A stretch of 64,000 nt of DNA. Source: Schizochytrium sp. TIO01. Taxonomy: Eukaryota; Protista; Bigyra: Labyrinthulomycetes. Positions 12,233 to 23,759 of this stretch are shown piece by piece (position 1 is the first letter of the stretch; every line of letters begins with the position of its first letter). The stretch spans positions 2,914,001 through 2,978,000 of the forward strand of contig SMSO01000034.1 of the NCBI GenBank assembly GCA_004764695.1, given 5' to 3'. The position numbers and the translations under genes were made by a program. The notes under the pieces were generated by a model, which saw nothing but the letters and a program-made list of their open reading frames with translations, had not been told where the DNA came from and made no database searches.

Positions 12233-14283
12233 TCGTTCTACGACCGAAAAGATCTTCGAAAGCGCCAAACGACAAAGTTCGAAACGAACGAAGAAAACGA
12301 ATCAAAGTCGAGCCCCGAACAGAATCAATCAACAAAGCAACCAGGCCAAAGAGCCAATCCGGAGCAGAATGCAAGCGTTAGGCCACGCTTGCGGGTCTGC
12401 TTGGCTGTAGTTCACTACACCAAAGCCACGTTGACATTATTGGTAGCCATGTTCCCTGTTGTACTAGCCAGATCCTCATTCATTCATTTATTCATATTAT
12501 TTGTCTTCACCTTTTGCAATTTTCTTTTCTCTTTCCTTTCTGTCACTTAGTACAACCTCCTCAGTCTAAACTATAGCAGTAGCCAAGCCCAAGATCGGAT
12601 CCGGGACAGCTACCTTCTGTCTCGTTCTGTTCCTTCGGTGTTCCAATAAGATAGTGATACCTCTTAATAGGTCGTTTTTTTTTTTTTTTCTTGTTTAAAA
12701 AATAGAAAGCAAATCGCCTGAGAATGAGACAACTTGCGGAACCAAGCTGATGTTAGACATTTCGGTATACTTGCAGAAAGCCACAGTTGCAAGCGACTGT
12801 TTATGCTAAGAGACATTTACGACGCTAGCTAACAAGATCTCTCACAGGGTATCCGGGTATACTGTTGAAGCAGCGTGCCTTACTTACATTTGAAAGTAAG
12901 TCTATGCAATCAACCTGCCTAAAGATGAAGGATTGTCTTTTAAGCAGTTACTTTATATTTTGCGATACAATGCATCTACAGGGAACGAGTCCTGGCCTTA
13001 AAAAGGTATCGATTCGCATTATGAGTTATTTTAATCTGTAGTACACCGCTTAAGATGGTGTGATTAGTAGAAGTATGGCCCATGGTTCGAAAATCTTGCT
13101 GACCATTTGCATTCAATTTCATGCCCTATCAAGAAATAATAACAGCACTTCATATTTTATTAACACCTGTTAAAGAAAACATTTCATGAAACAAAGAAAC
13201 TCCAGATCTAAAATCCTTACAATCCTTAAATGCTTCATCCAATTTTTGCATTTTAGCTGAGATTGACAACAAGATCGGTAAACCCAATCTCGAGTTTCAT
13301 ATTTCTGAGAACCACAACATGTGTCACTGACGTTGTACTAATCGAAATTCAAGGGGACGAGAGGTTGCATTTTGTAAACAGAATAATGGCTTAGATAAAG
13401 ATTTCCAATTATTTGTCCGATTCTTCAAATAAAAACATATGTAAACACACCCCTAAAAATATATCAACGGTGAATTATGCACGAATTCATTAGACATGGG
13501 CGTATGACAGCATCTAAGAACCCTCAACACTTTATTCGCTACGAATTCTGGCACAGTAAATAGTTTATTCATCTGAGCTAAACTTAGCCAGCAACATGAG
13601 CCTCTGTGTTAATAAAGGCATCGCATGTTTGGCAAATCAGTCAAGGAATTAATCACCCATTTTTGAATTGAAACTACATCACAAATATAACAATATTCCC
13701 TCCTAGGGCTTCAAAACAGATCCACTATAGAGGAAAAAGTACAATGCAGCAGGTGTTCTTCAAGATTTGGGGGTCGCGCACCAATCGCCATCTTATATAG
13801 CTAAAACAATAGCACTTGTGTGTACCCGTTTTAAGACACGGCGCGACCTAGGGTCTTAATGAATTGCATGAGTGGTCCTATCCAATGTATTATAGTACGG
13901 CGTCCTAAAATGGCTTCCGTTGAATAAAGTACGCGTCCTAAATTGCGGCATCGGTCCTAAAACAGGGACTCTTGCGAAGGCCGTGAAAGCAGCAAAAGAA
14001 GAGACGGTAAATTCAAATTCGAAGTCAAAATCAAATTCAGTCCTCAAACCATGCGAATTCGAAGCTAAGACCAAAGAAAACTTCAGGTTTGGATTTAGCT
14101 TGAAGTTCAAGGTTGAACGCGGGAGCGCGGGAGGGGACTGGAACGACCAGGCTTGGAAAAAAGGAAAGGATCTAATCTCAACCACTCTAATCCAGAGGAG
14201 TAGCTTTTGCTGTACTCCAAAACCAGATCAGATTGACCTTCGCTGGAGCGGGTGGCTTGAGCTTGGTCTTGGCGAGGAAGAAT

Positions 14284-17109
14284 ATGCTTCGCGTACGGGT
14301 CCCGTCGGCGCTGCGGCGCGGCGGTGGCGCGGGCCCGAAGGCCGTGGCGGAGATGGTTTCTCGCACGGTGCTTGTGTACAGCGGACGCAGCGCTGGTGTA
14401 GGTTTGCGCGAGTACTTGGAGTTCTGGTCGCAGCTGACGGTGGAGCAGATCACAGAGCTTGTCTCAGAAATCGTTGCCAAGATTGTGGACCTCGAGAGAC
14501 CCGAAAGGTCCAAGCTACGAGGTGCTACAGCCACAGCGGTCCGCAAGGAAGCGCCGTACAGAGCACTTGTGCAGACGCTCGACTACATTCACCTCTTCCT
14601 TAGGGTCGACTATGCTTCACCGAGGTTCGACCGCGCTGCATCCCTGTGGGAGTCTGCACAGGTGTCTATGTCCTCCCCGGCTGCAATGCGACGCGTCAAG
14701 GAGATCATGAGGGGTATGTTGCACAGAAGATCTAACCCAGGCGACCACCTTGTCACGTATGCGCTTGTGGACGCATGCTCGAGCGGTGTCGATATTGAAA
14801 CCTCTATAGACGCCATGAATAGCCCATTCATGTTTGCTTATGTGAGAAATTATTTGCACCAATCTGATCTTCAGGTTGGCCTTGTAGTTTATACTGAGCT
14901 GGCAAAGTACCTCTCTGGAGTCTTTAATGCGTGCAGGCAAACCCCAGTGGTCTTCAAGGGAACAATGCTAAATCTACTGTTCATGGTTAAGGAGGTATTG
15001 GTTTTGTGGCCTCCACAAAAGTCGGTGGTGGCACTGCTTGAGAATATGGCCAAGATGCTCCACGCATCAGTGCTTATGTGGCCGAAGCCGTACTGCACGT
15101 TTGCCCAGAACGTGCTTGAACGTATACAGATAGAAATTAAAAACCCTGGTTATCACTTGCGAATGAGGCTGTTGCAGGAGCAGCCAGATCTTGGAGTTCA
15201 TCTTCCTTCAGCGGCAAGTGCTCGCATAAGACCGGATGTCACGGTCATTGTCGATGATATGACTCTCTATGGAAACTTTCTCCTTCGTGCTTGCCGGTCC
15301 CTGACAAAATCCAAGGATCGGCCTCGCCTCGACACATTTGATCTAACACAGCGTGACCTTCTCGACAACCTTTTCCATTTGTCGTATATGTATGATCTAG
15401 GGTTCACTGCTACGTCGCTTGGGTCTCAGATAGCGCAGCTCTCGGATGAACAGGTCTCTGAATCACTCAAAATGCTTATGGAGCCCGAGTTACAGTTTCC
15501 TGGTTCTACTAGCATGTCCACAACATCTTCATCGTCATCTTCAACATCTACAAATCCTTCAGTGGGAGCACAGAGCTCTGCATCGACAAGACAAGGTCTA
15601 GCAAATTGGTTGAGCCGTCTCCCGGAAATACGCCATCAGGCACTCGGGGCAAACTTTATCTTGCAGTCTCTACAAACACACGCGGCGCGAAATTGGGACG
15701 AGGAAAATAGCGCAGGAAACGAAAGAAACTTTGCTCACTGGCTTGAGGTCCCGGAGTGCTCCTTTGATTTGCATAGCTATGATGCGATGTTGGAACACCA
15801 AGCTGCACCATTATGGAATACGACTAATCGCCTTCTTTGCTTAGGCACAAATCAATGCGTGCAACATAGTCTGTACTCATTTCGAGCGTCCTTGGCAGCG
15901 TCAGAAGCTAGTTCTCCCGAGGCAATCTACCTAGCACCAGGCCTTTGCCATAATGACTTGTGCGCTTTCCTTGCCTCCAGGGATGTGTGGTACTACAAAC
16001 ATGTGTACGCCCCCTTCTGCGCAAGCCTAAGCCTGTGTCCAGGTGTGGATGAGACACCTTCTATTTCTCGCCGGCGTCGATCTGCTAGTAGTGATGCAGC
16101 AGATATGGATATAGATGGAACTGTTTCTCCTTTGCAGCGTATCGTAGGTCTTCTTTCAGACTACGTACAAAGCGCCGAAGAAACATGCAATGTGCAGATT
16201 TTTGAGGTTCACTGTTTCTCAGATATTAAAAACTCAAAACCTGCTGAAATCATCCCGTTCCTGTGCCGTGTCGAGATTGGACTCGGCGCAGCTGCGCAGA
16301 TTCATAGCAATGCAACTACCGGCCGAGAGCGCGACCGTGTTCGCTCCGTGAGTACAAGCTCGGTTTCTTCAGCTGCGTCCTCGGTTTCCTCTACAGGATT
16401 TCTTTCTCCAACGCAACAAAGTGGCACAATGTCATTCTCGGGCCTCCCTACTGTCGCTACAGCCTCGAGCGCCAACATCGCTGCTACGACGCTCACTCCA
16501 ACACCTCCCGGAGTTTCAAGCCCGGGCATTGGATCGTCTGCAGCAATTAATTTTTCAGCACGCGAGCCGTGTGCATGGGATGAGGCAATGCTAGATCGCC
16601 GATTTCTCCGTAGTGGCGTGGGACCTGGCGCAACTCCTACGATTCAGGTATCAATGGAGGGTGTGAAATTAGATGGTACGGTTCTCTCCAAGGCTCTCAT
16701 GCTGCCTCCTGCTGAGTATCTTTCGCTGGTTCTTTCAAATTGCCCAGCTTATGCAAGCTCTACCTCTGATGGTGCAACATTAACTCCGCTGCCCTACCTT
16801 AGCCACACAGCACAAGTTAGTCCATTGCAGCCTTGGATGCAAGTAAGCTGGATCAAACAGGGCAACGTACAATATCTGACTGATCTCATGCGGAAGCGAG
16901 ATAAGAAGCCCAAAGAGTTAGATGGTCTGGCAGACGCTATTTCACGCGCGCATGAAGAGTTTGATGCTCGGTCAGTAGAGATCACGTCGGAAGGCGAGTC
17001 GTTCCAAATTTGCGTAGATGGTAATATCTTTGGACCTTTTCAGCGAATTAAAGTTGTGCCAGCACAAGATACTTTGCCTGTGCAAACGTTCTTGCCGGTT
17101 GTCTCCTAG
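14284..17109 (+). CDS. PI3K class IB adaptor p101/p84 (PIK3R5/6)-like protein
   Basis: Collinear motifs WPKPYC...IEIKNPG...EQ, RLLCLGT, NDLCAFLASRDVWY, VQIFEV...VEIG..AA, FQICVD and terminal LPVQTF correspond to p101 motifs recalled from memory. First ATG at 14284. Confidence 0.75.
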   Translation: MLRVRVPSALRRGGGAGPKAVAEMVSRTVLVYSGRSAGVGLREYLEFWSQLTVEQITELVSEIVAKIVDLERPERSKLRGATATAVRKEAPYRALVQTLDYIHLFLRVDYASPRFDRAASLWESAQVSMSSPAAMRRVKEIMRGMLHRRSNPGDHLVTYALVDACSSGVDIETSIDAMNSPFMFAYVRNYLHQSDLQVGLVVYTELAKYLSGVFNACRQTPVVFKGTMLNLLFMVKEVLVLWPPQKSVVALLENMAKMLHASVLMWPKPYCTFAQNVLERIQIEIKNPGYHLRMRLLQEQPDLGVHLPSAASARIRPDVTVIVDDMTLYGNFLLRACRSLTKSKDRPRLDTFDLTQRDLLDNLFHLSYMYDLGFTATSLGSQIAQLSDEQVSESLKMLMEPELQFPGSTSMSTTSSSSSSTSTNPSVGAQSSASTRQGLANWLSRLPEIRHQALGANFILQSLQTHAARNWDEENSAGNERNFAHWLEVPECSFDLHSYDAMLEHQAAPLWNTTNRLLCLGTNQCVQHSLYSFRASLAASEASSPEAIYLAPGLCHNDLCAFLASRDVWYYKHVYAPFCASLSLCPGVDETPSISRRRRSASSDAADMDIDGTVSPLQRIVGLLSDYVQSAEETCNVQIFEVHCFSDIKNSKPAEIIPFLCRVEIGLGAAAQIHSNATTGRERDRVRSVSTSSVSSAASSVSSTGFLSPTQQSGTMSFSGLPTVATASSANIAATTLTPTPPGVSSPGIGSSAAINFSAREPCAWDEAMLDRRFLRSGVGPGATPTIQVSMEGVKLDGTVLSKALMLPPAEYLSLVLSNCPAYASSTSDGATLTPLPYLSHTAQVSPLQPWMQVSWIKQGNVQYLTDLMRKRDKKPKELDGLADAISRAHEEFDARSVEITSEGESFQICVDGNIFGPFQRIKVVPAQDTLPVQTFLPVVS

Positions 17110-17801
17110 TTTTCGTATCTTTCCCTTACAACGTTAATCATTGTGTGCCTTCCTATGTGTGCGCAGTATAAAAGAGGGAAAACAATAAATCTTTATTGTT
17201 GGTTCAGTCGCACATACACAATAGTACTATAGTAGACTGAGTTATTATCCCTATAGCCTTGTAAATTGTAATGCAGTATATTTCTATTTTTTAAATAAGA
17301 TTGAGTCTTTAGGCTCTTTTTTTAACAATGGTCTTGATGTTTTAAGGTCGTAGCTATTCACTCTTTTCTATTATTTTGTTTTTAACACACACCGTATAGT
17401 TTCCATGCTTGATACTGAATCCTTGCAAACCGTACTAGCTATGATGTTGGATTGACCTATCAACATTTGTTTTTTGGATCACGGCTAAGATCCAGGTGAA
17501 AGTTTATTTAGTTTGTTTCGTATCCATTTCTCCACTATTTTCGTCTCCTCAGAATGACTCTTTTGATCAATTGTCAAGGGACACATCTAGAAAGTCCCAC
17601 CAAATTCTACCGTTGAAAAAGAGCCCAGAAAAAGCTTAGTATATACTAAAAGACAGCTTTCTATGTTGTGACGCAAAGAGCTCCCGGCAATCAGAAAGGT
17701 TTTCTGAAAAGCTCCTTACTTGAGTGTTGGAGGTCTGTCAAGCGCTTGCTTGTTTCTTTCGATTCGCTCGTGTTACAGCTGTTCGGGGCAAACACCTAAA
17801 G

Positions 17802-18782
17802 ATGGCGAGAGGTGCTGCATCCGCTTCATGCCGTTGGGCCTTTTTAGTTGTGGCGGCTACCTTGGCAACGAGTTCGCTTGCGCAGGTATCGAGTCAGGTC
17901 AGTGGAAGTGATGAATGCGTTGACTTGGGCTCTGATATGAGCTTAATGGCTTCTGGGTGCCTCTATGAGCTGACAGAGGATAACTTTGAGCAATTCCTTG
18001 ACCAATCTTTGGTGTCGTGCGTACTTTTCTATGAAAATGACAACGCAGCCTTTAAAGTTGCTGAGGCTGAGTTCAAGGATGCTGCCTCTCGCTTGGCTAC
18101 CCACGGGAACCTTTCAGTAGCCACCATGCATATTAGCTCAAACCCCAGAGTTGCTCGTTCCACAGCGGCGACTGGACCTGTATCAGTCAAGTTGTTCGAC
18201 AAACGTCTTCGGTCACAGAACTTTTATGATTTGTATGCTCTACATCTGAACGGCCCTCGTTTTGAAATAACTGGTGAGACCCTCTTCAATCTCATGCAGG
18301 ACTACTATCAAAATAGCACAGGGCACGAAGCATTGGACGAAATCGCTCAAGACTTTGCGCATTCTGTTATGCAGAGGGACGACGAATACGCAGAAAAAGC
18401 ACTTGCTCAAGCCCGTGAGGTAGCCAAGGACCTAAGTAATGGTATGGTATACCTTTCTGCGATGGAGTCTGTCAAGAATAAGGGCCTTTATGTTATTGCA
18501 AAGGCGTTTAATGATGTTTCGTTGGAGTTAGGCAGTGCTTCTCAACCTCAAGTGTCTGAATCTAGGCTTCCATTGGAGCAACGGGCACGTGCACTCTTAT
18601 TCATGCATATATCTGGTGAGCTCAGCAAGCCTTTGCTCAGCAAGGGCAAGGTTCCCACTTACACGCGGAAGTTCACGACTCCAGCGGAAGATGCTCCCAA
18701 AGACAGTGAAAAAACAGCGGAAGCAGCACGCGCAGCTGCCGCTCGTGCTGCGGCGCAGGCAGCAGGTACGTCTCTTGAGTGA
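17802..18782 (+). CDS. Secretory-pathway protein with redox-inactive thioredoxin fold and ERp29-like C-terminal helical domain
   Basis: Signal peptide (WAFLVVAATLATSSLA). Thioredoxin start ELTEDNFEQFL..VLFY lacks CxxC. ALDEIAQDF...VYLSAMESVKNKG resembles the ERp29 C-terminal domain. No KDEL. Confidence 0.65.
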   Translation: MARGAASASCRWAFLVVAATLATSSLAQVSSQVSGSDECVDLGSDMSLMASGCLYELTEDNFEQFLDQSLVSCVLFYENDNAAFKVAEAEFKDAASRLATHGNLSVATMHISSNPRVARSTAATGPVSVKLFDKRLRSQNFYDLYALHLNGPRFEITGETLFNLMQDYYQNSTGHEALDEIAQDFAHSVMQRDDEYAEKALAQAREVAKDLSNGMVYLSAMESVKNKGLYVIAKAFNDVSLELGSASQPQVSESRLPLEQRARALLFMHISGELSKPLLSKGKVPTYTRKFTTPAEDAPKDSEKTAEAARAAAARAAAQAAGTSLE

Positions 18783-21149: not shown

Positions 21150-22554
21150 TTACTTGTACAACTCGAAGACGATGCACTTGCGCGGCTCGTCGCCAGTGTC
21201 CTCTTCGTCAGCGGGGCGGAAGCCGTTCGGGTTGTTGCTCTGCCAGCGCCAGGAGTCTGCAACAGCCTCTTCAATACCAATGGTGGCCTCCCAACCGAGC
21301 TCCTCGCGAGCCTTAGAAGGGTCACCGTAGCAGGTGCCAATGTCACCAGCACGGCGAGGCGCAATCTTGTACGGCACCTCGTGACCGCAGGCCTTCTCCA
21401 TGTGCTTGACCATCTCGAGCACCGAGGTACCGCTGCCAGTACCAAGGTTGTAGGCCACAGCACCCATACCCTGGTTGTCCATAACCTTCTTGATGGCAGC
21501 AACATGGCCCTTGGCAAGATCCACAACGTGAATGTAGTCACGGACACCGGTACCGTCAGGGGTATCCCAGTCGTCACCAAAGACGCCGAGCTCCTTGAGC
21601 TTGCCAACAGCAACCTGAGAAATGTAAGGAAGCAAGTTGTTGGGAATGCCCTTGGGATCCTCGCCGATCAAGCCACTGGGGTGGGCGCCGACCGGGTTGA
21701 AGTAGCGAAGGAGAGCGACACTCCATACATTCTGTTGTATTAATTCGCAAAGCAAAGTCCAAAGTGTTTTACAACATCGGAGGACGGATAATTTCGTTAG
21801 TCATTTCATGCACATCAGAATGGCCATCCTATGCAGCAAGATATACAAAGCTTTGCGCTCGCCGATCATGCAGGGGATCAAGAGAGGAGCTATCTCCATC
21901 CCCATACATTGAGCCAAAACGCTCGGATTTTACTGCAGGAGCGCACAATGCTCGAATAATCAAACTTACCGGCTCGCTAACATCGACATCGCGGAAGATC
22001 TCCTCGATGAAGAGCTTGGTCTTTCCGTACGGGTTGGTGGAGCGAAGAGGGTGGGTCTCAGGGATAGGGACCTCCTCAGGGTCACCGTAGACGGTGGCAC
22101 TGCTGGAGAAGGCGACGGCGTGGCAGTCGTGCTTCTTAAGCAAATGAATGAGGTTGATGGTGCTGTTGAGGTTGTTGGCATGGTAGAGAAGAGGCAGCTT
22201 GACGCTCTCACCGACGGCCTTGAGGCCGGCAAAGTGAATGCATGCCTGGAAGGGAGCGAACTTGTTGAAGACCTCAGTGGCACGGGGAAGGTCCACGAGG
22301 TCGCACTCGGCAACAAGGATGTCCTCTTCAGCACAGCCAGTGATCTGGCGCACACGCTTGAGGGACTCAATGTTGGAGTTGTCGAAGTTATCCACGACGA
22401 CCACACGGTAGCCGGCATCGAGGAGCTCGATCACAGTGTGAGAGCCAATGTAGCCGGCACCGCCGGTAACAAGGACGCAGTCCTTGCCTGATCCGCGAGC
22501 ACGTTCAATCAGCTCAGGGGGGCTGGTGAGGCCCGAGGTCGCATTGTTGCCCAT
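21150..22554 (-). CDS. GALE: UDP-glucose 4-epimerase; two exons, join(22554..21970,21731..21150)
   Basis: [38 protein letters not shown] (YxxxK), [10 protein letters not shown] and GVRDYIHV. Intron 21969-21732 (GTAAGT...CAACAG) restores SEP-NVWS. An upstream in-frame ATG exists at 22617. Confidence 0.96.
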
Positions 22555-23759
22555 CCTTTGTCTGCGTTGAGATCCACGTTTCCACCGTCTCGTGAGAGTG
22601 TCCTGTACCCAAGTCATTATGCCAGCCCAAGGTCAGTGCTCAATCTCCAAATCTCCCAAACCGAGGAAGCTCCTTCTTAGAACAGGCCAGATCTCCTCTA
22701 CTCTTCGCTTCAAAGATACGCGAAGATCTTTAATCAGGACGCCGCCAAGGCTACAAATGCCCGTCGGATTCCCGCTAATAACCCTACGCCCGCGGTGGTC
22801 TTCTCGAGTCCGGTTGCTCTTAGGAATCAACCGATCAGTCGATCAGCTCGAGGCCAAGGGCACCGCTCTTGGTCTGCGGTCGAGGCCTTTGGGGGTTTGC
22901 TGGCGAAGGGGCCTCATTGTAGCCTCACACTGCACTTACCTTGCTTGGTTGAGGTCGCGTGCGTCGACGATCGCGTGCTCGCGAGGTCTTCTGTTTCTGT
23001 TTCTGTTTCTGTTTGTGATTCTTCTGCGAAGTGACCGCTTTTTTTCGCTTTCACTTTTTCTCTTTGTTTCTCTTCCTTTTATTTATACCTACTCATACTA
23101 TTTCCTACTATATAACTTGAGCGTTCTTTTCAAAATCTAAGAATGTTTTTAATTTGCCTCAGCTTATCAGGGAAGAAAAGCCAAAAGACGTTGACCGAAA
23201 TCGTTTGCACGGGCACTATTCTCCTGGAGGATATCCCGTGATTGCAATCATCTCCATACATACCTCGCCATGTGGACCTTTTCTGTCAAGCTGAGCAAAA
23301 CGCTTCTTTTCTTTCATCGTCTTGTTTCATAGCTCATCGTCGCCAAAAAAGCAAAGTAGTCACTAAAATGAAAAGAGATGCAGAGAAAAAAAAATGAAAA
23401 TGGAAAAAGAAACACTTACAGGTTGGCACTTGGCCGAACAGGACACCGTGTATAACATAAAGTTAATATGGTGAGTGGTGCCGCGTTCTGTGCATCTTGC
23501 TGATTTTAGCATTGGCTCTTGCGAAGTAAGTGCTCTGCTACTTTTGATAGGGTTACCGAAACTTGCGTATCGAAAGGCCATGAAGGATGGAAACTCTACT
23601 AGGTTGCTGATGGCTAAGGAATCTGGGCAGCTTACCATTTGCTTCCTGTTCACTCATCACGTGCAGACCTGAGGTTTCAAGGAAATCTCGATGAGCGATT
23701 TTTTTTATTATTGTTCTTGCTTGACCAAGAGGCGCTTGAAGAATTTATAAACCTCAATC

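Follow-up and report, generated by a model that had tools for sequence, protein, structure and literature searches.

The window analysed here, a stretch of 64,000 nucleotides from contig SMSO01000034.1 of the labyrinthulomycete Schizochytrium sp. TIO01, contains a gene for a protein of 941 amino acids that is related over its whole length to p101 and p84, the regulatory subunits of vertebrate class IB phosphoinositide 3-kinase (PI3K), which link this lipid kinase to G-protein signals in immune cells. It occupies an uninterrupted open reading frame (14233–17109) on the forward strand, whose first ATG opens an intronless coding sequence (Table 1). The gene is present in a single copy in the 64-Mb assembly, and a scan of the whole genome with the PF10486 (PI3K_1B_p101) profile gives 27.3 bits at this gene and no match at any other place. 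Three transcriptome-sized public runs from three different studies, whose RNA nature was guessed by the tool, each contain a bounded contig of ~3.25–3.3 kb that maps over its whole length and is colinear with the genome without joints (13963–17276, 14031–17277 and 14026–17292); a genome-sized run contains a 7.2-kb contig running through the same region. The bounded, joint-free contigs are as expected for an intronless mRNA of ~3.3 kb whose 5' leader measures some 250–320 nucleotides. Additionally, an MMETSP transcript of 3190 nucleotides carries the complete reading frame and encodes the same 941 amino acids except for I732V. This substitution, in a disordered loop, is also the only non-synonymous change among the eight coding differences between runs or strains, the other seven being synonymous. 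The gene thus seems to be transcribed in the thraustochytrid.

Table 1. Features of the p101/p84-like gene and its product; positions are counted from the first nucleotide of the window.
Feature	Positions	Strand	Amino acids	Basis or remark
Transcript-like contigs, bounded, ~3.25–3.3 kb	13963..17292	+		genome-colinear, without joints; three runs
Coding sequence, p101/p84-like protein	14284..17109	+	1–941	941 amino acids plus stop
N-terminal helical extension	14284..14733	+	1–150	helices 18–150; adds solenoid helices; without counterpart in p101/p84
Helical solenoid homologous to the p101/p84 N-terminal helices	14734..15198	+	151–305	profile and model alignment
Most conserved family motif, LMWPKPYC turn then EIKNPG	15073..15150	+	264–289	phmmer match to p101; column conservation
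α/β part, DAGK/YegS/SphK-like fold	15199..16179	+	306–632	low-confidence loops 408–484 and 595–600
Degenerate DAGK GGDG nucleotide-binding motif, CLGTNQ	15838..15855	+	519–524	without Asp
Conserved core motif PGLCHNDLCAFLASRDVWYYKHVYAPF	15937..16017	+	552–578	P552 100%, D567 99%, W569 95%, Y570 96%
C-terminal β-sandwich, p101 GBD equivalent	16180..17061	+	633–926	limits by analogy with p101
EIGLGAAA motif and two short helices, including Arg-rich RERDRVR	16273..16344	+	664–687	aligned with p101 ELGHSAAT...
Ser/Thr-rich disordered insertion	16345..16563	+	688–760	pLDDT 31–41; inside the EIG loop
C-terminal tail LPVQTFLP	17074..17097	+	931–938	aligns with p101 LPIMTF; returns to the α/β part

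A preliminary description of this DNA, made from the sequence alone, had proposed a full-length p101/p84-like protein on the strength of six motifs that appeared in the same order as in human p101. Taken singly, the protein scores 26 bits against PF10486 (E 2.5e-6), above the curated cut-off of 23 bits, and automated annotation already tags it with this family. The match is limited to amino acids 230–300, corresponding to profile positions 78–144 of 861; a phmmer search of the PDB sequences recovers p101 over the same stretch at E 0.019, placing WPKPYC...EIKNPG on WPVPYC...ELKAPG. The first motif (WPKPYC ... EIKNPG ... RLLQEQ), which coincides with the PF10486 match, thereby falls on p101 residues ~100–156. 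The rest of the chain was brought in by a family profile (alignment A4) made from 75 full-length members, with the 941-amino-acid protein as the first row, and run against all PDB sequences. This profile retrieves p101 at E 5.7e-32 and p84 at E 3.7e-18, values that place the resemblance far beyond chance, and beyond these two it gives no match below E 0.4 in the PDB. The p101 match spans sequence positions 29–566 and 600–876 of the 881-residue chain. The second to sixth motifs (RLLCLGT, NDLCAFLASRDVWYYKHV, LSDYV...VEIG.GAA, VEITSEGESFQICVD and LPVQTF) occupy the same profile columns as the corresponding p101 strings, and the core motif PGLCHNDLCAFLASRDVWYYKHVYAPF is aligned with p101 NDISHYLGMLDPWYERNV; all six pairs are hence confirmed in their order, the first by phmmer and the others by the profile. 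Among protein language-model neighbours of one family member, chordate PIK3R6 clusters score 0.91 and PACS 0.85.

The predicted structure is in accord with these alignments. An AlphaFold2 model calculated with the A4 alignment (predicted template-modelling score, pTM, 0.85; mean predicted local confidence, pLDDT, 78.9) has low-confidence regions at amino acids 1–15, in patches of 408–484, at 595–600 and at 689–759, and comprises a helical solenoid, an α/β barrel and a C-terminal β-sandwich in the order seen in the p101/p84 family. The p101 domain limits used for the boundary of the β-sandwich are those of PMC8397274. In a Foldseek comparison with the PDB the first two matches are p84 (8AJ8_B; E 4.8e-16, TM-score 0.67 by target) and p101 (7MEZ_B; E 1.3e-12), followed by sphingosine kinase 1, DAGK and YegS. 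Together, the sequence profile and the predicted fold uphold the proposal of a full-length p101/p84-like protein, and on this footing we regard homology along the entire chain as practically certain. The alignment of the models begins with model residue 148 on p84 residue 3, and with residue 155 on p101 residue 11. The N-terminal helical addition recognized in the preliminary description is therefore present, its length being ~150 residues rather than the ~200 first given. As its columns are filled in 47–88% of the 75 members (mostly 63–88%), it is a trait of the family.

With p101 (PIK3R5; PDB 7MEZ chain B and 8SO9–8SOE) the protein shares the solenoid, the DAGK-like α/β part, the β-sandwich and a C-terminal strand that runs back to the α/β part, as well as the motifs WPxPYC...E.K.PG, G(S/T)(D/N), ND...L..D.WY.(R/K).V, E(L/I)G..AA and LP(I/V).TF; both have a degenerate kinase motif. 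It departs from p101 in its low identity (13–16%), in the ~150 additional N-terminal helical residues, in the placement of its disordered inserts, and in belonging to a stramenopile, whereas p101 is the regulatory subunit of a vertebrate class IB PI3Kγ. The identity to p84 (p84/p87, PIK3R6; PDB 8AJ8 chain B) is 12–15%, and p84 differs further in having Leu in place of the near-invariant Trp of the family's WPxPY turn.

An exhaustive HMMER search from two thraustochytrid sequences yields 190 proteins at E<=1e-3, of which 64 reach E<=1e-10; most have 750–1300 amino acids and three matching stretches, one N-terminal, one in the middle and one C-terminal. A homologue search from the single protein returned the MMETSP copy and Hondaea only, and one from the family alignment gave the protein itself and one further hit. 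When compared by BLAST at 1e-30, 138 of 151 sequences join one component. Hondaea fermentalgiana has the nearest relative, a hypothetical protein with 51% identity and 98% coverage; the next nearest is from Mucochytrium quahogii. Hondaea is itself a thraustochytrid (Labyrinthulomycetes, Stramenopiles), and the nearest relatives of both the adaptor and the PI3K of this genome come from it, indicating that the contig is not derived from an animal, in keeping with the earlier view of a non-animal genome. Named members of the family occur in the labyrinthulomycetes Hondaea and Mucochytrium, in the bolidophyte Triparma and in the euglenid Ploeotia vitrea, and one record is filed under the chytrid Batrachochytrium salamandrivorans. 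The taxonomic range rests on these few, since transcriptome or metagenome assemblies are the source of most other members that were looked up; nonetheless, we take the breadth of the family across protist lineages to be real. The suggestion that the family is ancient is accordingly backed by at least 190 relatives and by named members in several protist lineages. A Pfam scan of 56 members recovered PF10486 in 39 (best E 1.4e-13), PACS-1 (PF10254) in 11 and DAGK_cat in three, and none of these 56 resembles a true vertebrate p101 or p84. Eight long members (1144–1322 amino acids) showed no informative extra domains.

Across the 75 aligned members 14 columns are at least 90% conserved, and five of these (W266 93%, P267 91%, P269 99%, E284 99% and G289 96%) are found in one helix-turn-helix at amino acids 246–286. 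Here the LMWPKPYC turn forms the loop between predicted helices 246–262 and 270–286, and aligns with p101 residues ~117–140. The main contact of p101 and p84 with p110γ is made by the α3–α4 and α5–α6 loops of the N-terminal helices, and residues 25–175 suffice for p110γ binding (PMC8397274, PMC10068899). The WPxPY turn would correspond to the α5–α6 turn of p101, and so to the main p110γ interface. At the other end of the protein, the C-terminal tail is also well conserved (P932 80%, F936 83% and P938 87% in the same alignment), and the proline at the C-terminus of p101 is in contact with the C2 domain (PMC8397274).

A search of the genome for class I PI3K and G-protein genes, which the preliminary description had put forward as a way to check a PI3K/G-protein module, recovered a PI3K of RBD-C2-helical-kinase architecture, together with Gα and Gγ genes. 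The sole RBD-bearing PI3K of the genome is encoded on contig C30 (locus L026:3257–9949, reverse strand; P0160, 2222 amino acids from the first ATG); three SH3 and four cyclic nucleotide-binding (cNMP) domains precede its RBD, C2 domain, helical domain and kinase domain. For the helical and kinase portion the best PDB matches are class I p110 isoforms, with β, α, δ and γ about equally close (E ~1e-120). Hondaea possesses orthologues of both the adaptor and this PI3K; the latter, of 1514 amino acids, retains the cNMP and the RBD-C2-helical-kinase parts. A single literature search brought up no class I-like PI3K with possible regulation by cyclic nucleotides. A second PI3K, on contig C24 (locus L027:2871–6965, forward strand; 1365 amino acids), combines WW, cNMP-binding and GAF domains with a C2-helical-kinase part and has no detectable RBD, so that here too a cyclic-nucleotide sensor is joined to a PI3K. 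A Vps34-like gene on contig C4 encodes a further C2-bearing PI3K. Genes for at least 13 Gα and three Gγ subunits and up to five PTEN-like genes are present in the genome as well. Four of the Gα genes are clustered within ~26 kb (C30:1577709–1603772), and one of these has a twin of identical score at the start of contig C8 (834–1880), which points to a tandem expansion and possibly to an assembly duplicate.

Taken together, the conserved turn, the C-terminal tail, the RBD-bearing PI3K and the complement of G-protein and PTEN-like genes suggest that the protein, a scaffold without catalytic function in the manner of p101 and p84, could serve a class I-like PI3K as its regulatory subunit, a reading that in our judgement is about evenly balanced between being right and wrong. 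Under it, the best candidate for the partner would be the PI3K of 2222 amino acids on contig C30. The adaptor would use the WPxPY...E..PG turn and the TF(L/F)P tail to dock on the C2 domain and the linkers on either side of it, much as p101 and p84 do on p110γ, and the β-sandwich might help to place the complex at the membrane.

A further and more speculative step concerns G-protein coupling. In p101 the β8–β9 loop (residues 699–727) confers sensitivity to Gβγ (PMC10068899), and a short helix within it (709–713) binds the hot spot on Gβ (PMC10187307); p84 is without the helical β8–β9 extension (PMC10068899). Sensitivity to Gβγ through the C-terminal domain is a feature of p101 and is weak in p84. 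In the profile alignment the loop starts with the shared E(L/I)G..AA motif, and amino acids 664–785 of the protist protein probably correspond to it, to within a few residues. Following the EIG motif, AlphaFold2 predicts a helix at 667–678 and the Arg-rich helix at 681–687, so that the protein is like p101 and unlike p84 in bearing helices in this loop; their position is nearer to that in p101 but the sequence differs, with an Arg-rich RERDRVR in place of the SKRL hot-spot helix of p101. It is conceivable, although we think it unlikely, that this helical loop binds Gβγ, and if it did so, it might couple the many G proteins of the organism to the synthesis of phosphatidylinositol 3,4,5-trisphosphate (PIP3).

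Several points weigh against the protein being a p101-like regulatory subunit of a PI3K. Its identity to p101 and p84 is no higher than 12–16%. The loop equivalent to the Gβγ loop of p101 is split by a Ser-rich disordered insertion of ~73 residues, whose columns are filled in 3–23% of the family members; it is also present in Hondaea and is confined to thraustochytrids. The equation of the WPxPY turn with α5–α6 derives from helix counts and published domain limits, rather than from coordinates. In the C30 PI3K the linkers are long and disordered, and the N-terminus does not resemble that of p110γ, in which the ABD orders the linker bound by p101 (PMC8397274). The α/β core also appears to resemble PACS-1, weakly, and one member of the family is filed under the chytrid Batrachochytrium salamandrivorans, while fungi are reported to be without class I or class II PI3Ks (PMC4617754). 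This last case implies either that the partner can differ or that the record is a contaminant. A complex prediction for amino acids 1–470 of the adaptor with 1315–1760 of the C30 PI3K (linker, C2, linker) gave no answer (score 0.00) and is evidence neither way; it did not draw on our alignments, and the fold of the partner in it was uncertain.

The strongest alternative accepts the homology to p101 and p84 and gives the protein a different partner. In this case the family would be a general scaffold of the DAGK fold, for instance a PACS-like sorting or membrane adaptor or the regulator of some other lipid enzyme, and the coupling to PI3Kγ would be a later, animal-specific use. The chytrid record speaks for it, as do the PACS-1 matches, albeit weak, in 11 of the 56 members scanned, and the structural neighbours of an ESM Atlas model, which are PACS1/2 and YegS. 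Two members even exceed the 25-bit cut-off of PF10254 (P0014 with 35.3 bits and P0043 with 26.5 bits); the 941-amino-acid protein itself stays below it, at 13.8 bits (E 0.031) over the α/β core. This similarity to the C-terminal region of PACS-1 and PACS-2 is confined to the α/β core in all members scanned and never extends to the N-terminal solenoid with its WPxPY turn. Moreover, PF10486 matches outnumber those of PACS-1 by 39 to 11, the language-model neighbours favour PIK3R6, and no PACS gene was found in the genome. The best-conserved part of the family, which it has in common with p101 and p84, aligns with the described p110γ surface of p101, the mapping being by helix counts. We consider a different partner to be a serious possibility, though one that is somewhat more probably wrong than right.

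A second alternative is that the protein is an active lipid kinase of the DAGK or sphingosine kinase type to which a regulatory solenoid has been added. The family does contain members that may be active kinases: four of the 75 keep GGDG(T/L), three of these four also keep DGE, and P0051 exceeds the cut-off of PF10486, with 40 bits, as well as that of DAGK_cat, with 27.2 bits against 23.6. P0043 combines PF10486 (41.8 bits) with PACS-1 (26.5 against 25) and a sub-threshold match to DAGK_cat (19.7 against 23.6). The subgroup listed as keeping the DAGK motif consists of P0051, P0094, P0095, P0060 and P0043, in most cases with PLG and DGE. Members that match the p101, PACS-1 and DAGK models together tie these three groups to one another at the sequence level. 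In the 941-amino-acid protein, however, the columns that read GGDGT and DGE in the intact members read LGTNQ (amino acids 520–524) and VDGN, and the Pfam scan gave no match to DAGK_cat. The same columns read GSDR and DQDE in p101, and GDDR in p84. As the GGDG-equivalent motif lacks the Asp, the protein is predicted to be a pseudo-kinase, and is likely not an enzyme, which leaves an active kinase quite improbable. Compared with DAGK, YegS and sphingosine kinase 1 (PF00781), it has lost the nucleotide-binding and catalytic motif and has gained a helical solenoid of 300 amino acids; the p101-like family is also distinguished from these enzymes by being eukaryotic and by the size of its members, at 750–1300 amino acids. 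Finally, the notion that the likeness to p101 and p84 is a product of chance or composition, or that the contig is an animal contaminant, could draw on the thinness of the single-sequence evidence (a Pfam match of 70 amino acids and the phmmer E of 0.019), but is refuted by the family profile, the Foldseek matches and the model alignment, and its probability is negligible.

Some other features of the protein and its surroundings deserve mention. Two of the disordered loops contain basic and Ser-rich motifs, SRRRRS.SSD at amino acids 591–604 (16054–16095) and GR.RDRVRSVSTSSVSS.ASSVSS at 680–703 (16321–16392), which are nearly invariant between the protein and its Hondaea relative despite an overall identity of 51%. 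These motifs fit the kinase consensus patterns RxRxxS and RRxS, and are possible sites of phosphoregulation. The neighbouring genes in the window, coding for an amino-acid permease, an ankyrin protein, an epimerase fragment and proteins without assignment, are not informative regarding function. The reading frame downstream (17724–18782, forward strand; 352 amino acids) gave no match in the Pfam scan; close to the N-terminus its product carries a hydrophobic stretch that resembles a signal peptide, and the C-terminus is rich in Ala. Another, of 262 amino acids (21832–22617, reverse strand), matches only the N-terminal half of the NAD-dependent epimerase and GDP-mannose dehydratase models, and the remainder of this gene probably lies beyond an intron or a change of frame.

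A survey of PI3Ks that employed a BLASTP cut-off of E<=1e-30 places the origin of the class IB regulatory subunits in the ancestor of vertebrates (PMC4617754), in agreement with the statement of the preliminary description that p101 and p84 are usually regarded as a vertebrate innovation. Dictyostelium and Entamoeba are described in a review as having catalytic class I PI3Ks and no regulatory subunit (PMC6563779), and no description of p101/p84 homologues outside the vertebrates was found in the literature searched. In light of the present family, these adaptors appear to be much older than vertebrates. A broader scenario, which we advance tentatively and with considerable doubt, is that adaptors of the p101/p84 type already served the ancestral class I/II PI3K as a regulatory subunit before stramenopiles, euglenozoans and opisthokonts diverged. 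They might have descended from an active DAGK-like lipid kinase, of which the few members that still have GGDGT and DGE would be a trace, with PACS as a further offshoot. In protists such as this thraustochytrid, they might link heterotrimeric G proteins to the production of PIP3 by unusual PI3Ks that bear cNMP-binding and SH3 domains.

The existence of a wide protist family, homologous to p101 and p84 over the full length and most conserved at the described grip on p110γ, opens the origin of the class IB system to direct tests. Strain-engineering studies make use of thraustochytrids of the Aurantiochytrium group, and the divergent sequences of the family may help to sort out which features of p101 and p84 are essential.

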